DNA from: Octopus sinensis
Lineage: Eukaryota
Length of the DNA: 11,886 bases
Reading direction: 5' to 3'
NCBI RefSeq assembly: GCF_006345805.1
Contig: NW_021826739.1
Span: 1 to 11,886, forward strand
Shown here: positions 312 through 11,090 of the stretch, piece after piece
How positions within the stretch are numbered: the stretch's first letter is position 1
Layout of the letters: every line of letters starts with the position of its first letter
Translations under genes and position numbers: made by a program
Notes under the pieces: model-generated
Database searches by the model: none
Told to the model about the DNA's origin: nothing
The model's input: the letters and a program-made list of their open reading frames with translations, nothing else

Positions 312-734
312 CAAATCTTTCCTGCGTTTAAAACATTAATGGGTGGTCTGAGGGAGATTTAGCTGCGATAGTATTACGGGAGGAGAGACTAGGTAGAGTT
401 CTTTGATAACTTATTTGTATGCTTAAATACTGTCTGTAAATTGATTTCCTATGTTGCCGCGCAGTGCTGATTGATGTCTTTAGAATATATCTTACAAACT
501 CATAAAGAGACTAACTCAGTGTTTTTGGAGTAAATTAATAACAGTTGAGAGACTGCAACAGAGACTGCAGCAAAATGTAGGGGGGTGAAGCTTGGGGATC
601 GACGACCCAGCATAATAGATCATAATCATATAACATGTAACATGTTGAAGCTATGGAACTAACAACATATGGTGCATATATTGTTACATATTGAACTATA
701 AACTTCAATATCGACTTATACAACGAGTTCGTAC

Positions 735-1292: not shown

Positions 1293-1475
1293 GGATCAAC
1301 CTGGCGCTTGCATCTAGTTCGCAATAAAGATCTCTATTTACCACTTCGAAGTCGTGTGTTCATTTCTTCAGTGTGAATCAGCAAAATTGTGGTCTGTATT
1401 GACAGTACTGACACCAGTAATTTATTGGTATTAAGGTCAAGACGACTGATTGTAAAAAGAGTAATCAGAAAAGTA

Positions 1476-1707
1476 AGGCGGCGAGCTGGCTGAAACGTTA
1501 GCACGTCGGGCGAAATGCGTAGCCGAATTTGGTCTGCCGTTACGTTCTGAGTTCAAATTCCGCCAAGGTCGACTTTGCTTTTCATACTTTCGGGGTCGAT
1601 TAAATAAGTACCAGTTACGCACTGGGGTCGATATAATCGACTTAATCTGTTAGTCTGTCCTTGTTTGTCCTCTCTATGTTTAGCCCCTTGTGGGTAGTAA
1701 AGAAATA
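1476..1707 (+). mobile_element. Full-length tRNA-derived octopus SINE (tail type A), first unit of a dimer
   Basis: Pol III A-box-like TGGCTGAAACGTT (1487-1499) and B-box GAGTTCAAATTCC (1549-1561). Highly similar to 3240-3470. Confidence 0.92.
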
Positions 1708-1891
1708 GGTATTTCGTCTGCCGTTACGTCCTGAGTTCAAATTCCACTGAGGGCGACTTTGTCTTTCATCCTTTCGGGGTCGATTAAATAAGTACCAGTT
1801 ACGCACTGGGGTCGATATAATCGACTTAATCCCTTTGTCTGTCCTTGTTTGTCCCCTCTATGTTTAGCCCATTGTCGGCAATAAACAAATA
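1708..1891 (+). mobile_element. 5'-truncated second SINE unit fused in tandem to 1476-1707
   Basis: Starts at internal GGTATTTCGTCTGCC, retains the B box and repeats the body and tail. The whole dimer is flanked by AGAAAAGTA (1467-1475, 1892-1900). Confidence 0.9.
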
Positions 1892-2006
1892 AGAAAAGTA
1901 TACTGCGTGGAGGTTGGCTGACGGTTCGTAGAAATTTGAACAATAAAGAAATTTGACGGTTCGTATCTTGCCGTAAGCCCTGCATTTTATATATTGTTGT
2001 TGACTA

Positions 2007-2217
2007 AGGCTGTCAGCTGGCAGAAACGTTAGCACGTCGGGCGAAATGCTTAGCGGTATTTCGTCTGTCTTTACGTTTTGAGTTCAAATTCTGCCGAGGT
2101 CGACTTTGCCTTTTCGGGGTCGATAAATTAAGTACCAGTTGCCTACTGGGATCGATCTAATCGACTGGTCCCCTTCCCCCAAAATTTCGGGCCTGGTGCC
2201 CAGAGTAGAAAAAATTT
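2007..2217 (+). mobile_element. Full-length tRNA-derived SINE with alternative 3' tail (type B), 10-bp TSD
   Basis: Same head and body as 1476-1641, then tail ggtccccttcccccaaaatttcgggcctggtgcccagagtagaaaaaa. TSD TTGTTGACTA at 1997-2006 and 2218-2227. Confidence 0.92.
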
Positions 2218-2565
2218 TTGTTGACTACTCACAGATCAGCTTTGTCGATCAATGGCGTGTTAGCCATGACAATCCCATCTGTTAATTTTGATCAGGCATA
2301 GATTTCTAGGATTACATTATCCAATATGTTCTTTTGATATTTATGACAGTATTTATTGTGACAGCATGAAAGAGATTTGGCTATTATTTCTAGCAGGTCA
2401 AGCATTATTTATATCTTATTAAACTTTAAAAGACAACACGAAGCAAGGGCAGGGCTCACCTTTCATGATGGCGTTGAAGCATTGGATTCAAACTTTTGTT
2501 CAGTTTATTAAGTGAATGTAACAGCTGCCGGGTCACATTCTCAACTTCAGATCACAACTGCTTGT

Positions 2566-2567
<2 letters not shown>

Positions 2568-2612
<45 letters not shown>

Positions 2613-2764
2613 TGTGTCTGTTGTGTGTGTATGTATGTATGTATGTATGTATGATGTAAGTATGTATGCGTGCATGTATGTATATATTGATGGATAGATG
2701 CATGTAGTGATGTATGTGTGTATGTGTATATATACACACACATATACATACACACATATATGTA
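2568..2764. repeat. Compound (TG)n/(TATG)n/(CA)n microsatellite
   Basis: Direct reading; explains the five overlapping CV/HT-repeat ORFs. Confidence 0.92.
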
Positions 2765-3239
2765 CAGAAGCACGTATACACGCAGTTCCTCAGCACAAGA
2801 CCAAAACGTGCTCTTTTTAATTTTTGGTGACAGTATAGTTCTGTGTCATTGCCAAGTGACCAAACTCTCAATGAATTAGATTACCAAGTTAACATAAAAT
2901 GTACCATAGAAAGGAGCGAAACCCAGGCTCCGCTGCTCGCCTAGCTGAGAAAAAAAACTGTCACGGTATTAGTCGCTCTCTGGCTGGTTTATGGTTGAGC
3001 TTCTGACAGTAGAGACCTCCTGCGTTCTTGGTCCCCGGACCACATTCCTGCTTATCGCAATCGGGGCAGAGATTGCTGTCCGCAAGTGCGAACCCTGAAA
3101 GTCAGAGTGGCTGTTCAAGCACTTCTTCCTCGCTATTATCCGGACCAACGCCGTTTCCATTTCGTCTGCCATGAGAAATGTTTCTATATTGTGAGAGGCA
3201 AGATTCTCCGTATTTGAGTAATACAACGTCGGTATTACC

Positions 3240-3470
3240 TGCGGCGAGCTGGCGGAAACGTTAGCACGCCGGGCGAAATGCTTAGCGGTATTTAGTCTGC
3301 CGTTACGTTCTGAGTTCAAATTCCGCTGAGGTCGACTTTGCCTTTCATCCTTTCGGGGTCGATAAATTAAGTACCAGTTACGCACTGGGGTCGATATAAC
3401 CGACTTAATCCGTTCGTCTGTCCTTGTTTGTCCCCTCTGTATTTAGCCCCTTGTGGGTAATAAAGAAATA
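3240..3470 (+). mobile_element. Full-length tRNA-derived SINE (tail type A), 9-bp TSD
   Basis: A/B boxes are present and the element is near-identical to 1476-1707. TSD GGTATTACC at 3231-3239 and 3471-3479. Confidence 0.93.
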
Positions 3471-3754
3471 GGTATTACCACAGAAAGGATCAAGGAAAGG
3501 AGTCAGTAGCACCAGCAGCATATAACTAATGACTCTGATCTTCGAAGAATGCGGGTTCAAATAGAGCTTTGATTGAAATGCTGGGTGACCGGCAGCAAGA
3601 ATACTCGATTCTCGATTACCACATATAAAATATTGTGGAGAACGCTTGTAGATCATATTTGATTGGTGATTGAGCTACACGTAATTGAAGCTAATAAGAA
3701 TCTCAGAGTGTGGCATTTAACGACAGATCTTAAATATAAAAAAACTGTGAGCAT

Positions 3755-3812
3755 AAAACACAAAAATAACAAACCAAACACAAAGTTTTTTAATTGAAAT
3801 AACAATTTTATT
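3755..3812 (-). terminator. Candidate distal polyadenylation site (AATAAA + GU-rich downstream element)
   Basis: Minus strand: AATAAA at 3812-3807, then ~20 nt later CTTTGTGTTTGGTTTGTTATTTTTGTGTTTT (3785-3755). Upstream TGTA (CFIm-type) motifs sit at 3897-3894, 3889-3886 and 3857-3854. The sequence fits the metazoan consensus; actual use is inferred. Confidence 0.5.
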
Positions 3813-4231
3813 TTAGCTTATAAATTCTTTTTTCATCTTAAAAATCTCTTATATACATTAAATGTTTCATAATATTTCTTCATTATACATATATACACAT
3901 ATACATATATATATATATGAAGTATATATGTAATAATACATACAGACAATTATACATATATTTATATTTAAAAAAAAAGAAAAACATGTTTTTCCTAGTC
4001 TTGCTACTTTGACCTTCCGTAGACTAGGGAGGGTTTACAAAAATACACATTTGATTAATTCAACAAAGTTTTAACAAGAAGCACCGAAGGAAATTCGTTG
4101 CCAAGATTCTGGCAGTATTGGTACCGTAGTATAGCAGTGTTCTCACAAAGGACATGTTGTAAGTTGTTCATGTTTTAGTAACCGCAACATAATTTGCATT
4201 CAGAAAACAATAGCTTCAAATAGGTTATGCG

Positions 4232-5837: not shown

Positions 5838-6111
5838 TCGAATTTTCTGAATTTAGTTCAGATTTATATTGCAATATTAGAAATGGCGTTTTAATAAACA
5901 TTTATATATTTATGTTATAATAAAATTGTTATTAATAATAAACATCAGCATTATTTAAAGAAAGTTATTATTGTTGGATATTTAGTTGCTGTTTTTCTGT
6001 ATAAAAAAATAAAGAGAGAATACTAATATAACTACAAAAACATTAATAAACGTACAACTTTTTAATATACTTTCGTTTTTTTTTTTATATTTTAATTTTC
6101 CTATAACATGC

Positions 6112-6133
6112 TAATACTGTGATTGTAAAGTGT
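6112..6133 (-). promoter_or_regulatory. Candidate miR-8/miR-200-family target site (8mer seed + 3' supplementary pairing)
   Basis: Plus strand TAATACTGTGATTGTAAAGTGT vs protostome miR-8 UAAUACUGUCAGGUAAAGAUGUC (recalled). Identity at miRNA positions 1-9, 11, 13-18 and 20-22 means the minus-strand transcript is complementary at those positions. Confidence 0.55.
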
Positions 6134-6141
6134 TCCCTTTG

Positions 6142-7425: not shown

Positions 7426-8425
7426 GCAGTTTAACATATATACAGACAAGAGATTTGTACATATACACATATATGCATGAATGCGTGCCAACATATAGTG
7501 CTAAGCGTTTCAGTTTTTGTATATAAAAAAAATTAAAATTAATTAAAAATCTGATTAATTTTGGAGACACTCTTTAAGTGTCGAAATTTTTCCAAAAGAT
7601 TCTTTTCTTTTTTTTTTTTGCTTTGTTTTACAGATTTTTGCGTTTTTGATTGTCCTCTAAGAATAATATTTAAGGTGAGATTAATTTAACTGCTGTACTA
7701 AATAAACATAAATTATTTTTCTTTTCTTTTTTTTTTTGTTTAGTGGTTTTTCTCTTGTTATTTATTGTGTTTTATTTATTCATATCTTTGCTGACAGAAT
7801 GATTTAACTTCTCAGCGGATTGCGTTCTCTGTGTGCCCGGGAGCGGAGAACACAAGCTCGAGTCGTGTTGGTGGCGGTGTTGGGCAGCTAAATGATGGAA
7901 GTAAAAAAAAAAGAAAACAAACAAAAAAAAAAATAAAATATAGAAGCTGACTATCCCAGTTTCGAACAGAAGTGTCATTCTACTATTATCGTTTTGAATA
8001 TTATTATTATTTAATATTTTTGTAATCGGAGGAGTGTGTGCGTGAGTTGGGTAGGGGTTAATTAAAGGAGTTAAGGCGATTATGAAGCAGAGCTTTAAAT
8101 AATTTGTATGATTATCTAATTTGTTCAAAGCTACATCAGTGCCATCGCAATAATAGTAATAATAATAATAACAACAATAATAATAGTAATAATGATAACA
8201 GCTTTTTCTTTTGTTTTTACTTTTACCAGAAAAAAAATTATCAAGCAGACAAAAACAAACAATAACAACACCAAAAAAACCCCCAATGCTTTGTCGGAAT
8301 TTCAGTTCATTTTTGTTGTTGTTGTTATTGGGGTTGGGGATAGGATAAAAAGCATTGAATTGTTGTTGCTGACTGGTACGTCCATCTTTAGAGTGCGACC
8401 TACAGAATGGTGCCAACCGTTATTC

Positions 8426-8453: not shown

Positions 8454-8562
8454 AGACAAAGTAGAATATTCGGACATTTTCTTTTTTTCTCCTTTTTTTT
8501 TACGGCCTGCCGTAAAAAAAAAACACACAAAATAAAAATAAGAAAAATAGAGAAAGAAGCAA

Positions 8563-9429: not shown

Positions 9430-10824
9430 TCATATGTGACGCTTCATATGCAGTGAGAGATGGTCGCTTCTAGAAAATGCCCGCTCGCACAGATGACATT
9501 GGAAAGGTCTGTCTCCTGTGTGTTTTCGATAATGGCGGGTCAGTTCATCAGAACGAGCAAACTTCCAACCACAACCTTTCCAATTGCAGTGGTAAGGCTT
9601 CTCTCCCGTGTGTGTACGGAGATGAGCCTTGAGATGAGAGCTCTTCGTATAGGTTTTACTACATCCAGTATGAGTGCATGTGTGGTTGGTCTGACGTTTG
9701 CGACCCCAAGAACGTCTGCCTCGTTTCTTTGGAACATTAACCCCGCCCTCAACAATGGCTTGCTGCTGAGGAAGCAACAAGTCCACGAGTTGAGGAGACG
9801 CCGGAGGTGTAATCATTGGATGAGGTAACTGTAACATCGTGTTCTGTGGGTTCCCCAGTTTAGGGAGAATATGAGGAGGCAGAAGGATGGACTGCTGGTG
9901 TGGATGATGAGGGTGCATCATGCCTAATTGGTTGCACTGCATTTGTTTGCGTTCGTCGTGCATCTCAGGGGACGCTGGTGGAGACATGTGACCTGGGATG
10001 ACGTAATGTATTTGATTTGGTTGTTGCGCGGCACCTGCGGGCAAACTATTCAATGTGGCGTTGTAAGTGGCACAAGACGAAGCTAAACTACCGTATTCCT
10101 GTTTGGGAATAACATTCATTGGAGAGGTTTTATATTCGGATTTAACTGTCATCATGTCAACCGGATTGCTGCTATGATGATGTTGATGCTGCTGCTGCTG
10201 CTGTTGATGATGGTGATGATGATGATGATGATGATGACTTTCAGTATCAAACTTGATGTCAGGGATGTCTAGAAAAGCTGAATGGAAGTCTGGGAGTGGC
10301 TCTAAAGTCTCCTGTTTGATTTTCATGGTTGGCTCCTCTTGGTACAGACTTTGGTTTTCGGCGGTGTTGTTCAGAATGAAGTCTAAATCGAGCAGGTGCT
10401 CATAGTTATCCAACATCTGTTCTTGTCCACGGTGGTTGCCCAATAAATAAGACAGCTGGCTGCTGTATGAATGCTGCTTCATCAGGTTAGACATAACAGC
10501 TAAAGAACTCAGATTACTGCCGCTAATGCTGTTGCTGGGGACCATGACGTTTGAAGGGTTATTAACACTGTTGTTGAGATTGTCTGTGGTTGTGGTGTTG
10601 CTGCTATTATTGTTGTTAACGCCACTATTACTCATGGCAAGGATGTGTAGGTTTCCAACGGTCGGCATATTTGCTGACGTGTTCATGCTAGACTGTGGAG
10701 GTTGGTTATGGGTCGGCCGGCTTGGACCGAGGGACAGTTGATCTGACTGCGACATAATATGTAGCATGCTTGTTTCATAAGGTGTGTTATCCTGGTACAA
10801 TAGGTTCTCCACTTCTTGCCAAGT
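9430..10824 (-). CDS. Klf1/2/4: Terminal coding exon (464 codons + TGA; 5'-partial gene) of a Kruppel-like factor, KLF1/2/4 subfamily zinc-finger transcription factor
   Basis: Translation ends in three C2H2 fingers, [82 protein letters not shown], nearly identical to vertebrate KLF2/KLF4 fingers. They are preceded by the basic [13 protein letters not shown] motif typical of KLF1/2/4. The exon also has LLDLDFIL (10372-10395; cf. KLF4 [10 protein letters not shown]) and TPPASP (cf. KLF2 LTPPASP). The first 14 aa of the 478-aa ORF ([14 protein letters not shown]) are the translated polypyrimidine tract, so the real exon starts at 10824 (TWQEVENLL..., phase 0). Confidence 0.96.
9436..9678 (-). 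other. KLF-type triple C2H2 zinc-finger DNA-binding domain (CX4C, CX4C, CX2C fingers), encoded without introns
   Basis: Direct translation. Spacing CX4CX12HX3H-7-CX4CX12HX3H-7-CX2CX12HX3H is diagnostic of KLF/Sp. Recognition helices KSSHLKA / RSDELTR / RSDHLSL imply GC/CACCC-box binding. Confidence 0.97.
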
Positions 10825-10860
10825 CTGAAATGAAAAGAAAAAAAAATTAATTAAAATAAT
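10825..10860 (-). promoter_or_regulatory. 3' splice acceptor (polypyrimidine tract + CAG) of the KLF intron
   Basis: Minus strand reads attattttaattaatttttttttcttttcatttcag|ACTTGGCAA. AG is at 10826-10825, with no other AG in the preceding ~35 nt. TTAAT branch-point-like motifs lie ~20-30 nt upstream. Confidence 0.9.
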
Positions 10861-11090
10861 CTCCACATATATGTTGCTATATATTTCATTAGCGTATATT
10901 TATATATGTGCGCGTACAATCAGTTATTCATGGTGTGCGCACGTGTATGTTAGGTGCATTTAATCAAAGTTTCCTAATCCACTCTGTTACCAATGCCACA
11001 AACTTCCGTGCCAAAATATACAGTTTATATGCAATGGTGTAACATTCACAAAATGGCTCCGAAACTATTAGGAATGTAGATGAATATACC

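Follow-up and report, generated by a model that had tools for sequence, protein, structure and literature searches.

Gene content of the contig

The window analyzed here is the entire 11,886-bp Octopus sinensis contig VCDQ01008093.1 of the assembly GCA_006345805.1, to which all window coordinates refer. It contains, on its minus strand, the end of a Krueppel-like factor (KLF) gene and, in the DNA downstream of this gene, a sequence complementary to miR-8-3p:

9430..10866, minus strand: final coding exon of a Krueppel-like factor, encoding three C2H2 zinc fingers at the C-terminus (open reading frame, Pfam, and homology)
6112..6135, minus strand: miR-8-3p-complementary sequence (sequence and pairing)

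The annotated CDS of the KLF gene occupies 9430-10767 (445 aa), with the TGA stop codon at 9430-9432. Three Pfam zf-C2H2 domains are found at the C-terminus of the protein and end near the stop, which together with the homology identifies the host gene as a KLF. The best match of the protein, with 96% identity, is 'Krueppel-like factor luna isoform X1' of O. bimaculoides, and the vertebrate proteins nearest to its C-terminal 170 aa are KLF2, KLF4, KLF1, and KLF17, from which the KLF1/2/4 label proposed in an earlier note on this DNA appears reasonable. The gene model on the contig is truncated: it comprises 445 aa, whereas the proteins of O. bimaculoides and O. vulgaris have 563-569 aa. The 5' exons are located off the contig. 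The protein also contains a long His/Gln tract. The miR-8-3p-complementary sequence begins 3,295 nt downstream of the KLF stop and is on the same strand as the gene.

Pairing between the site and miR-8-3p

The minus strand at window 6112-6135 reads GAACACUUUACAAUCACAGUAUUA; the plus strand is TAATACTGTGATTGTAAAGTGTTC, and its reverse complement is GAACACTTTACAATCACAGTATTA. Both the sequence and its position agree exactly with the earlier note, where this stretch had been described as an unusually complete miR-8 target site. The site is composed of the following elements:

6112-6119, minus strand: 8-mer CAGUAUUA, pairing with miR-8 nt 1-8
6120, minus strand: position-9 pair, extending the 8-mer
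6121-6124, minus strand: loop between the seed helix and the 3' helix
6125-6130, minus strand: CUUUAC, pairing with miR-8 nt 13-18
6131-6133, minus strand: ACA, pairing with miR-8 nt 20-22

The miR-8-3p sequence given in the earlier note, UAAUACUGUCAGGUAAAGAUGUC, is correct for Drosophila and identical in Biomphalaria glabrata, where bgl-miR-8-3p has 0 mismatches to dme-miR-8-3p. The seed of octopus miR-8 is confirmed, because CAGTATTA is listed as the 8-mer response element of Ovu-Mir-8 (Zolotarov et al. 2022, data file S3, PMC9699675), and the octopus seed thus matches this sequence. The 3' half of octopus miR-8 is presumably the same as the insect and mollusc sequence.

The duplex calculated using RNAduplex pairs nt 1-9, 13-18, and 20-22 of miR-8-3p with the site. 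A 3 x 4 nt internal loop is formed by miRNA nt 10-12 and four nucleotides of the target, A19 is bulged, and C23 is unpaired. The energy of the duplex is -16.3 to -17.1 kcal/mol, compared to -36.1 kcal/mol for the perfect complement. The previous count of 19 paired nucleotides out of 23 includes a nineteenth pair, A11:U, that is isolated and absent from the minimum-energy duplex.

The match to nt 2-8 is perfect and an A is located opposite nt 1, which together form a canonical 8-mer. On the 3' side, nt 13-18 form contiguous Watson-Crick pairs, where at least 3-4 around nt 13-16 are expected for supplementary pairing; the offset is +1, and the TargetScan-like 3' pairing score is 5.0 on the assumption that the 3' half of octopus miR-8 is equal to the insect and gastropod sequence. 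The complementarity between the site and miR-8-3p is real, and its shape is that of a canonical 8-mer with 3'-supplementary pairing. The flanks consist of a degenerate TA/TG repeat on the 5' side and an A-rich tract on the 3' side, in agreement with the island between an A/T tract and a microsatellite that had been noted. The context of the site is AU-rich.

Canonical 8-mer sites with 3'-supplementary pairing (Grimson et al. 2007; Bartel 2009/2018) share with the octopus site the 8-mer with an A opposite nt 1, contiguous Watson-Crick pairs centered on nt 13-16 (13-18 in octopus), a small offset (+1), and AU-rich surroundings. As in those sites, the center of the duplex is unpaired, so that slicing would not take place. 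In contrast to those sites, the octopus candidate has only a putative location in an expressed 3'UTR and was not found to be preferentially conserved. It would also fall midway along a very long UTR, a position at which the efficacy is usually lower.

Candidate polyadenylation signals downstream of the KLF gene

The earlier note had placed the site in the KLF 3'UTR. A sensitive comparison between Octopus and Argonauta hians revealed collinear conserved blocks at 0.91-1.03, 1.57-1.60, and 5.34-5.68 kb from the KLF stop, and no conservation was detected between 1.6 and 5.3 kb. The features that bear on the formation of the mRNA 3' end are as follows:

7834-7858, minus strand: GC-rich block conserved in Argonauta, where an AAUAAA directly follows the same block
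7757..7781, minus strand: candidate proximal poly(A) cluster of three AAUAAA, ~1.65 kb from the stop and ~50 nt after the conserved block
6074..6101, minus strand: AUUAAA and, after it, a genomic A11 run, located 16-40 nt 3' of the site; possible poly(A) signal, not conserved
3753..4150, minus strand: Octopus-Argonauta conserved block with the layout of a poly(A) site, ~5.6 kb from the stop (alignment; Argonauta locus ~28990-29415)
3840-3860, minus strand: UGUA block with two motifs, conserved in Argonauta
3807-3812, minus strand: AAUAAA, conserved in Argonauta
3755-3784, minus strand: GU-rich downstream element, conserved in Argonauta

The cluster at 7757-7781 is a probable proximal poly(A) site, the use of which would exclude the miR-8 site from the mRNA. 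The distal block at 3753-4150 is a candidate distal poly(A) site, the use of which would include the miR-8 site; it shows the order UGUA, AAUAAA, and GU-rich element on the KLF strand, and the conservation stops just beyond it. The A11 run at 6074-6101 is likely to be an internal-priming site in oligo-dT data.

The miR-8 site is located between the proximal cluster (1.65 kb) and the distal poly(A) site (5.6 kb). The existence of a long 3'UTR isoform that includes the site is plausible in view of the conserved same-strand poly(A) site at 5.6 kb, and we infer from these signals that the KLF transcript may undergo alternative polyadenylation with a 3'UTR of ~5.6 kb in its long form. The assignment of the site to the 3'UTR would hold for such a long isoform; it is opposed by the distance of 3.3 kb from the stop, by the proximal cluster at 1.65 kb, and by the median 3'UTR length in octopus, which is 350-380 nt (PMC9699675). 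In our estimate, the chance that the site lies within the mature mRNA is about one half.

Only slightly below an even chance is, in our judgment, the possibility that the site is never part of the mature mRNA. KLF transcripts would then end at the proximal cluster, the DNA of the site would be intergenic, and the distal block would represent an unannotated transcript or regulatory DNA. The short median 3'UTR of octopus agrees with this explanation, as do the conserved block followed by AAUAAA at 1.65 kb in Octopus, with its counterpart at the matching place in Argonauta, and the stretch from 1.6 to 5.3 kb in which no conservation was detected. It is also consistent with the public sequencing run assemblies, in which the site region has no recorded protein or ORF (the site-spanning ORF was searched, and the largest UTR ORF was looked up). 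However, the strand-specific order of the UGUA, AAUAAA, and GU-rich elements follows the KLF strand and is collinear in Argonauta, and the annotations of O. bimaculoides, O. vulgaris, and Argonauta place no further gene in the 10 kb downstream of KLF; both observations count against this explanation.

A stem-loop, UUUUUUUACGGCAGGCCGUAAAAAA, was also found in the 3' flank at window 8496-8520 on the minus strand, 0.9 kb from the stop. Its folding energy is -12.9 kcal/mol (z = -3.1), and in the 37-nt segment that was folded the stem is up to 14 bp long. The stem-loop is conserved in Argonauta, an A-to-G change there retaining the pair as G.U, and it is a candidate 3'UTR regulatory element.

Conservation of the site

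The sequence of O. vulgaris is identical across the site; it is near-identical to that of O. sinensis throughout, and hence the comparison is uninformative. The assembly of O. bimaculoides contains 440 N exactly over the site island. Even with sequence at this place, the comparison would be a weak one, because the unique noncoding DNA of O. bimaculoides is 92-95% identical to that of O. sinensis well outside conserved elements, a level at which a 24-mer survives neutrally in ~1 of 6 cases.

The site island does not align to Argonauta hians, although an alignment was obtained for the blocks located 0.9-1.6 and 5.3-5.7 kb from the stop. Three miR-8 7-mer matches are present at the Argonauta locus, at other positions, with weak duplexes and at chance frequency; no orthologous site was found among them. 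In squid and cuttlefish, the transcript contigs from public sequencing run assemblies contained no miR-8 6-mer in their 3'UTR portions, which were <= 654 nt long. The deep conservation of a miR-8/200-KLF link that the earlier note had considered receives no support from these comparisons: the island is not alignable in Argonauta, the seed matches are at chance level in four octopods, and none are found in the squid and cuttlefish contigs.

The 34.5 kb KLF locus of O. bimaculoides in GCA_001194135.2 contains eleven N runs. Of those that lie in the part aligned to the window, most fall on microsatellite-rich segments. Because the N runs fall there, comparisons of UTRs with this assembly systematically miss microsatellite-rich regions.

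Chance expectation of the match

The seed match occurs at the frequency expected for the composition of the region. The 7-mer AGTATTA is found 4 times in the window compared to 5.1 expected, and when the putative 5.66 kb UTR (stop to distal poly(A) site) was subjected to dinucleotide shuffling, 26% of the shuffles contained the miR-8 8-mer. In each of O. sinensis, O. vulgaris, O. bimaculoides, and Argonauta, miR-8 sites of 7-mer or better are about as numerous as expected. When the 8-mer was fixed and combined with real flanks from the same region, the observed duplex energy was reached in 4.3% of draws, and the observed 3' pairing score of 5.0 was reached in 0.53% of draws. The 3' pairing is the unusual part of the match, and the seed is at chance level.

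When shuffled miR-8 sequences were compared with the region, an equally good site was obtained in 0.16-0.44% of trials by the 3' score and in 2.6-3.2% of trials by energy. The probability of such a site per miRNA is ~0.002-0.03, depending on the metric. As ~138 miRNA families are known in octopus (PMC9699675), the expected number of families with such a site per region is 0.2-0.6 by the 3' score and reaches ~4 by energy, and chance would place such a site, for one or other of these ~138 families, in roughly 20-45% of similar regions. The match is nominally unusual for miR-8 alone but is not unusual once the ~138 octopus families are counted.

A control panel of 63 B. glabrata miRNAs was compared with the same 9.4 kb. 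By energy fraction, the miR-8 site ranks fifth, as 4 of the 63 control miRNAs have a better site in the 9.4 kb. By the Watson-Crick-only 3'-supplementary score, it ranks first among the 30 seed sites found for the 63 control miRNAs.

A second site of the form UUUAC-N-CAGUAUU is located at window 426-440 on the minus strand, 9 kb from the stop; it is a miR-8 7mer-m8 site in which UUUAC pairs with nt 13-17. Its seed is intact in O. sinensis only, with CAGCAUU in O. vulgaris and AAGGUAUU in O. bimaculoides (CAGCATT and AAGGTATT as DNA). The pattern TTTAC-N(1-7)-CAGTATT occurs 2 times in the window compared to 0.03 expected, in a test that was formulated post hoc. The idea that the two sites are copies of one repeat was rejected, as no alignment is obtained between their flanks and only O. 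sinensis has the second site. A miR-8 7mer-m8 site that is private to O. bimaculoides lies there at 2.5 kb from the stop (locus ~27050-27087, -18.1 kcal/mol), and no miR-8 seed site is listed at the matching position in O. sinensis. These observations show that near-identical site architectures come and go between close species and arise easily in this DNA.

Possible function of the site

The explanation that we favor, and hold to be somewhat probable, is that the site is a neutral complement to miR-8-3p in the AT-rich, unconserved DNA downstream of KLF and, if it is included in a long isoform, an ordinary and mild canonical target. Neutral mutation in such DNA would create the 8-mer together with its 3'-supplementary complement. 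The site would be present only in the long 3'UTR isoform, if this isoform exists, and in cells expressing both the isoform and miR-8, an Argonaute-miR-8 complex would be expected to bind it as any canonical 8-mer. The outcome would be a mild destabilization of the mRNA or a translational repression, which the pairing of nt 13-18 may strengthen somewhat. The site is thus probably neutral and at most an ordinary young canonical site; on this reading it is neither a deeply conserved miR-8/200-KLF element nor a trigger of target-directed miRNA degradation (TDMD).

Unlikely, though with a weight that deserves consideration, is a selected and functional canonical miR-8 site in the long KLF 3'UTR isoform, specific to the Octopus lineage and convergent, which would lower KLF in the miR-8-rich intestine and suckers. 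It would account for the 8-mer with its position-9 pair and the six contiguous Watson-Crick pairs at nt 13-18 with an offset of +1, and it agrees with the AU-rich context and with the conserved distal poly(A) site, which lies on the strand of the gene. Against a chance origin, the site is in the top 0.5% of real flanks and has the best Watson-Crick 3' score relative to the 63 control miRNAs, which is nominally significant for miR-8 alone, and selection on the site is therefore conceivable; however, these statistics do not survive the count of ~138 miRNA families. Conservation is seen only in the near-identical sister species O. vulgaris, and transcription through the site is itself inferred from the poly(A) signals. 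Within the putative 5.6 kb UTR, the site would occupy a central position, with 2.3 kb separating it from the nearest end, and the context-score work of Grimson et al. in 2007 reportedly found such a position to be unfavorable.

Targeting of KLF4 by miR-200c was reportedly described by Wellner et al. in 2009. That miR-200c targets KLF4 in mammals, a precedent on which the earlier note had relied, is documented (PMC4416001), and because this targeting exists, the prior for a functional octopus site is raised. Ovu-Mir-8 is expressed in the intestine and suckers (supplement of PMC9699675), which is also in favor of function. On the other hand, no KLF entry was found in the portion of the conserved-MRE list of Zolotarov et al. 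that was searched; the authors call the list incomplete, and its silence on KLF carries little weight.

The mammalian and octopus cases are alike in the miRNA family, as miR-8 is the protostome member with the seed AAUACUG, and in a target that belongs to the KLF1/2/4-like group. They differ in that no homology of the sites was found, and the cephalopod relatives examined were without an orthologous site. Any functional miR-8-KLF link in octopus would be an independent gain and thus convergent. It is improbable, in our estimate, that the Octopus lineage gained a strong 3'-supplementary miR-8 site in a long isoform of a KLF1/2/4-type gene and thereby recreated the miR-200-KLF4 link by convergence, a proposal whose extreme version holds that the site also tunes the stability of miR-8.

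Comparison with TDMD triggers and miRNA genes

Known TDMD triggers are typically conserved and abundant. As a trigger, the KLF transcript would bind miR-8, expose the miRNA's 3' end, and recruit ZSWIM8, upon which miR-8 would decay. We regard this as very improbable. The site resembles the triggers CYRANO-miR-7 and NREP-miR-29b, and AGO1-miR-999 and h-miR-7 in Drosophila, in its seed match, in its central loop, and in 3' pairing near the miRNA 3' end, here reaching nt 22. Unlike these triggers, it has a short 3' helix with an interruption (6 + 3 pairs), its energy ratio is below published thresholds, and conservation was not found.

The thresholds of TDMDfinder are >= 7 consecutive 3' pairs, a bulge of 2-8 nt, and an energy ratio of >= 0.7 relative to the optimal TDMD duplex (PMC8887481). 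The Drosophila CLASH screen of Sheng et al. 2023 used > 7 pairs in a row within the last 8 nt, or 9 in a row, with a duplex energy cut-off of -16 kcal/mol (PMC10102002). The site has the seed pairing (nt 1-9) and a central bulge within ~2-8 nt (nt 10-12 facing four target nt), and its duplex, at -16.3 to -17.1 kcal/mol, lies just beyond the energy cut-off set by Sheng et al. 2023. However, the 3' helix has 6 consecutive pairs (nt 13-18), followed by the bulged A19, 3 pairs (nt 20-22), and the unpaired terminal C23, which is below the pair counts of both TDMDfinder and the Drosophila CLASH screen. The energy ratio is 0.64-0.68 when the duplex is compared with -25.3 kcal/mol for the optimal TDMD duplex, and it is thus also below the threshold. 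The site passes on seed and bulge and fails on the two discriminating properties, and the resemblance to TDMD triggers suggested in the earlier note does not extend to these. In addition, miR-8 is not mentioned among the Dora-sensitive miRNAs of PMC10102002.

The plus strand at 6112-6135 could also be read as a miR-8-like miRNA gene, or as the decayed copy of such a gene, as UAAUACUGUGAUUGUAAAGUGUUC resembles miR-8 at 19/23 nt, with the exact seed and GUAAAG at the matching place, but this is hardly credible and was rejected, since no hairpin is formed on either strand (z-scores of +1.05 and -0.26 compared to shuffles), neither flank holds a complementary arm, and no Rfam mir-8 match is obtained even at E = 10. 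The sub-threshold Rfam matches near the site (mir-297, mir-466, and mir-3149) correspond to TG/TA microsatellites.

Implications for the KLF 3' region

The neutral complement that we favor mainly illustrates how easily a seed with 3' complementarity can arise in long, AT-rich DNA downstream of octopus genes. Because complementarity arises so easily, such sites should be interpreted as regulatory elements or TDMD triggers only with the support of both conservation and transcript evidence. If the site were functional, it would add one more predicted miRNA-target pair, in which an epithelial miRNA family regulates a KLF in a cephalopod as well as in mammals. The architecture of the KLF 3' region is described better by the conserved poly(A) sites and the stem-loop than by the miR-8 site.

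Seed matches to a further miRNA, miR-252a-5p, were observed in SINE-like repeats at ~1474-3405, which lie beyond the distal poly(A) site and whose copies include a 184-bp tandem pair at 1527-1891. The matches are located at window 3368-3374, 2129-2135, 1789-1795, and 1605-1611 on the minus strand. When the B. glabrata miRNA sequence was used, the pairing at these sites was wobble-rich and extended over 19-20 of 21 nt, with energies of -22 to -25 kcal/mol.
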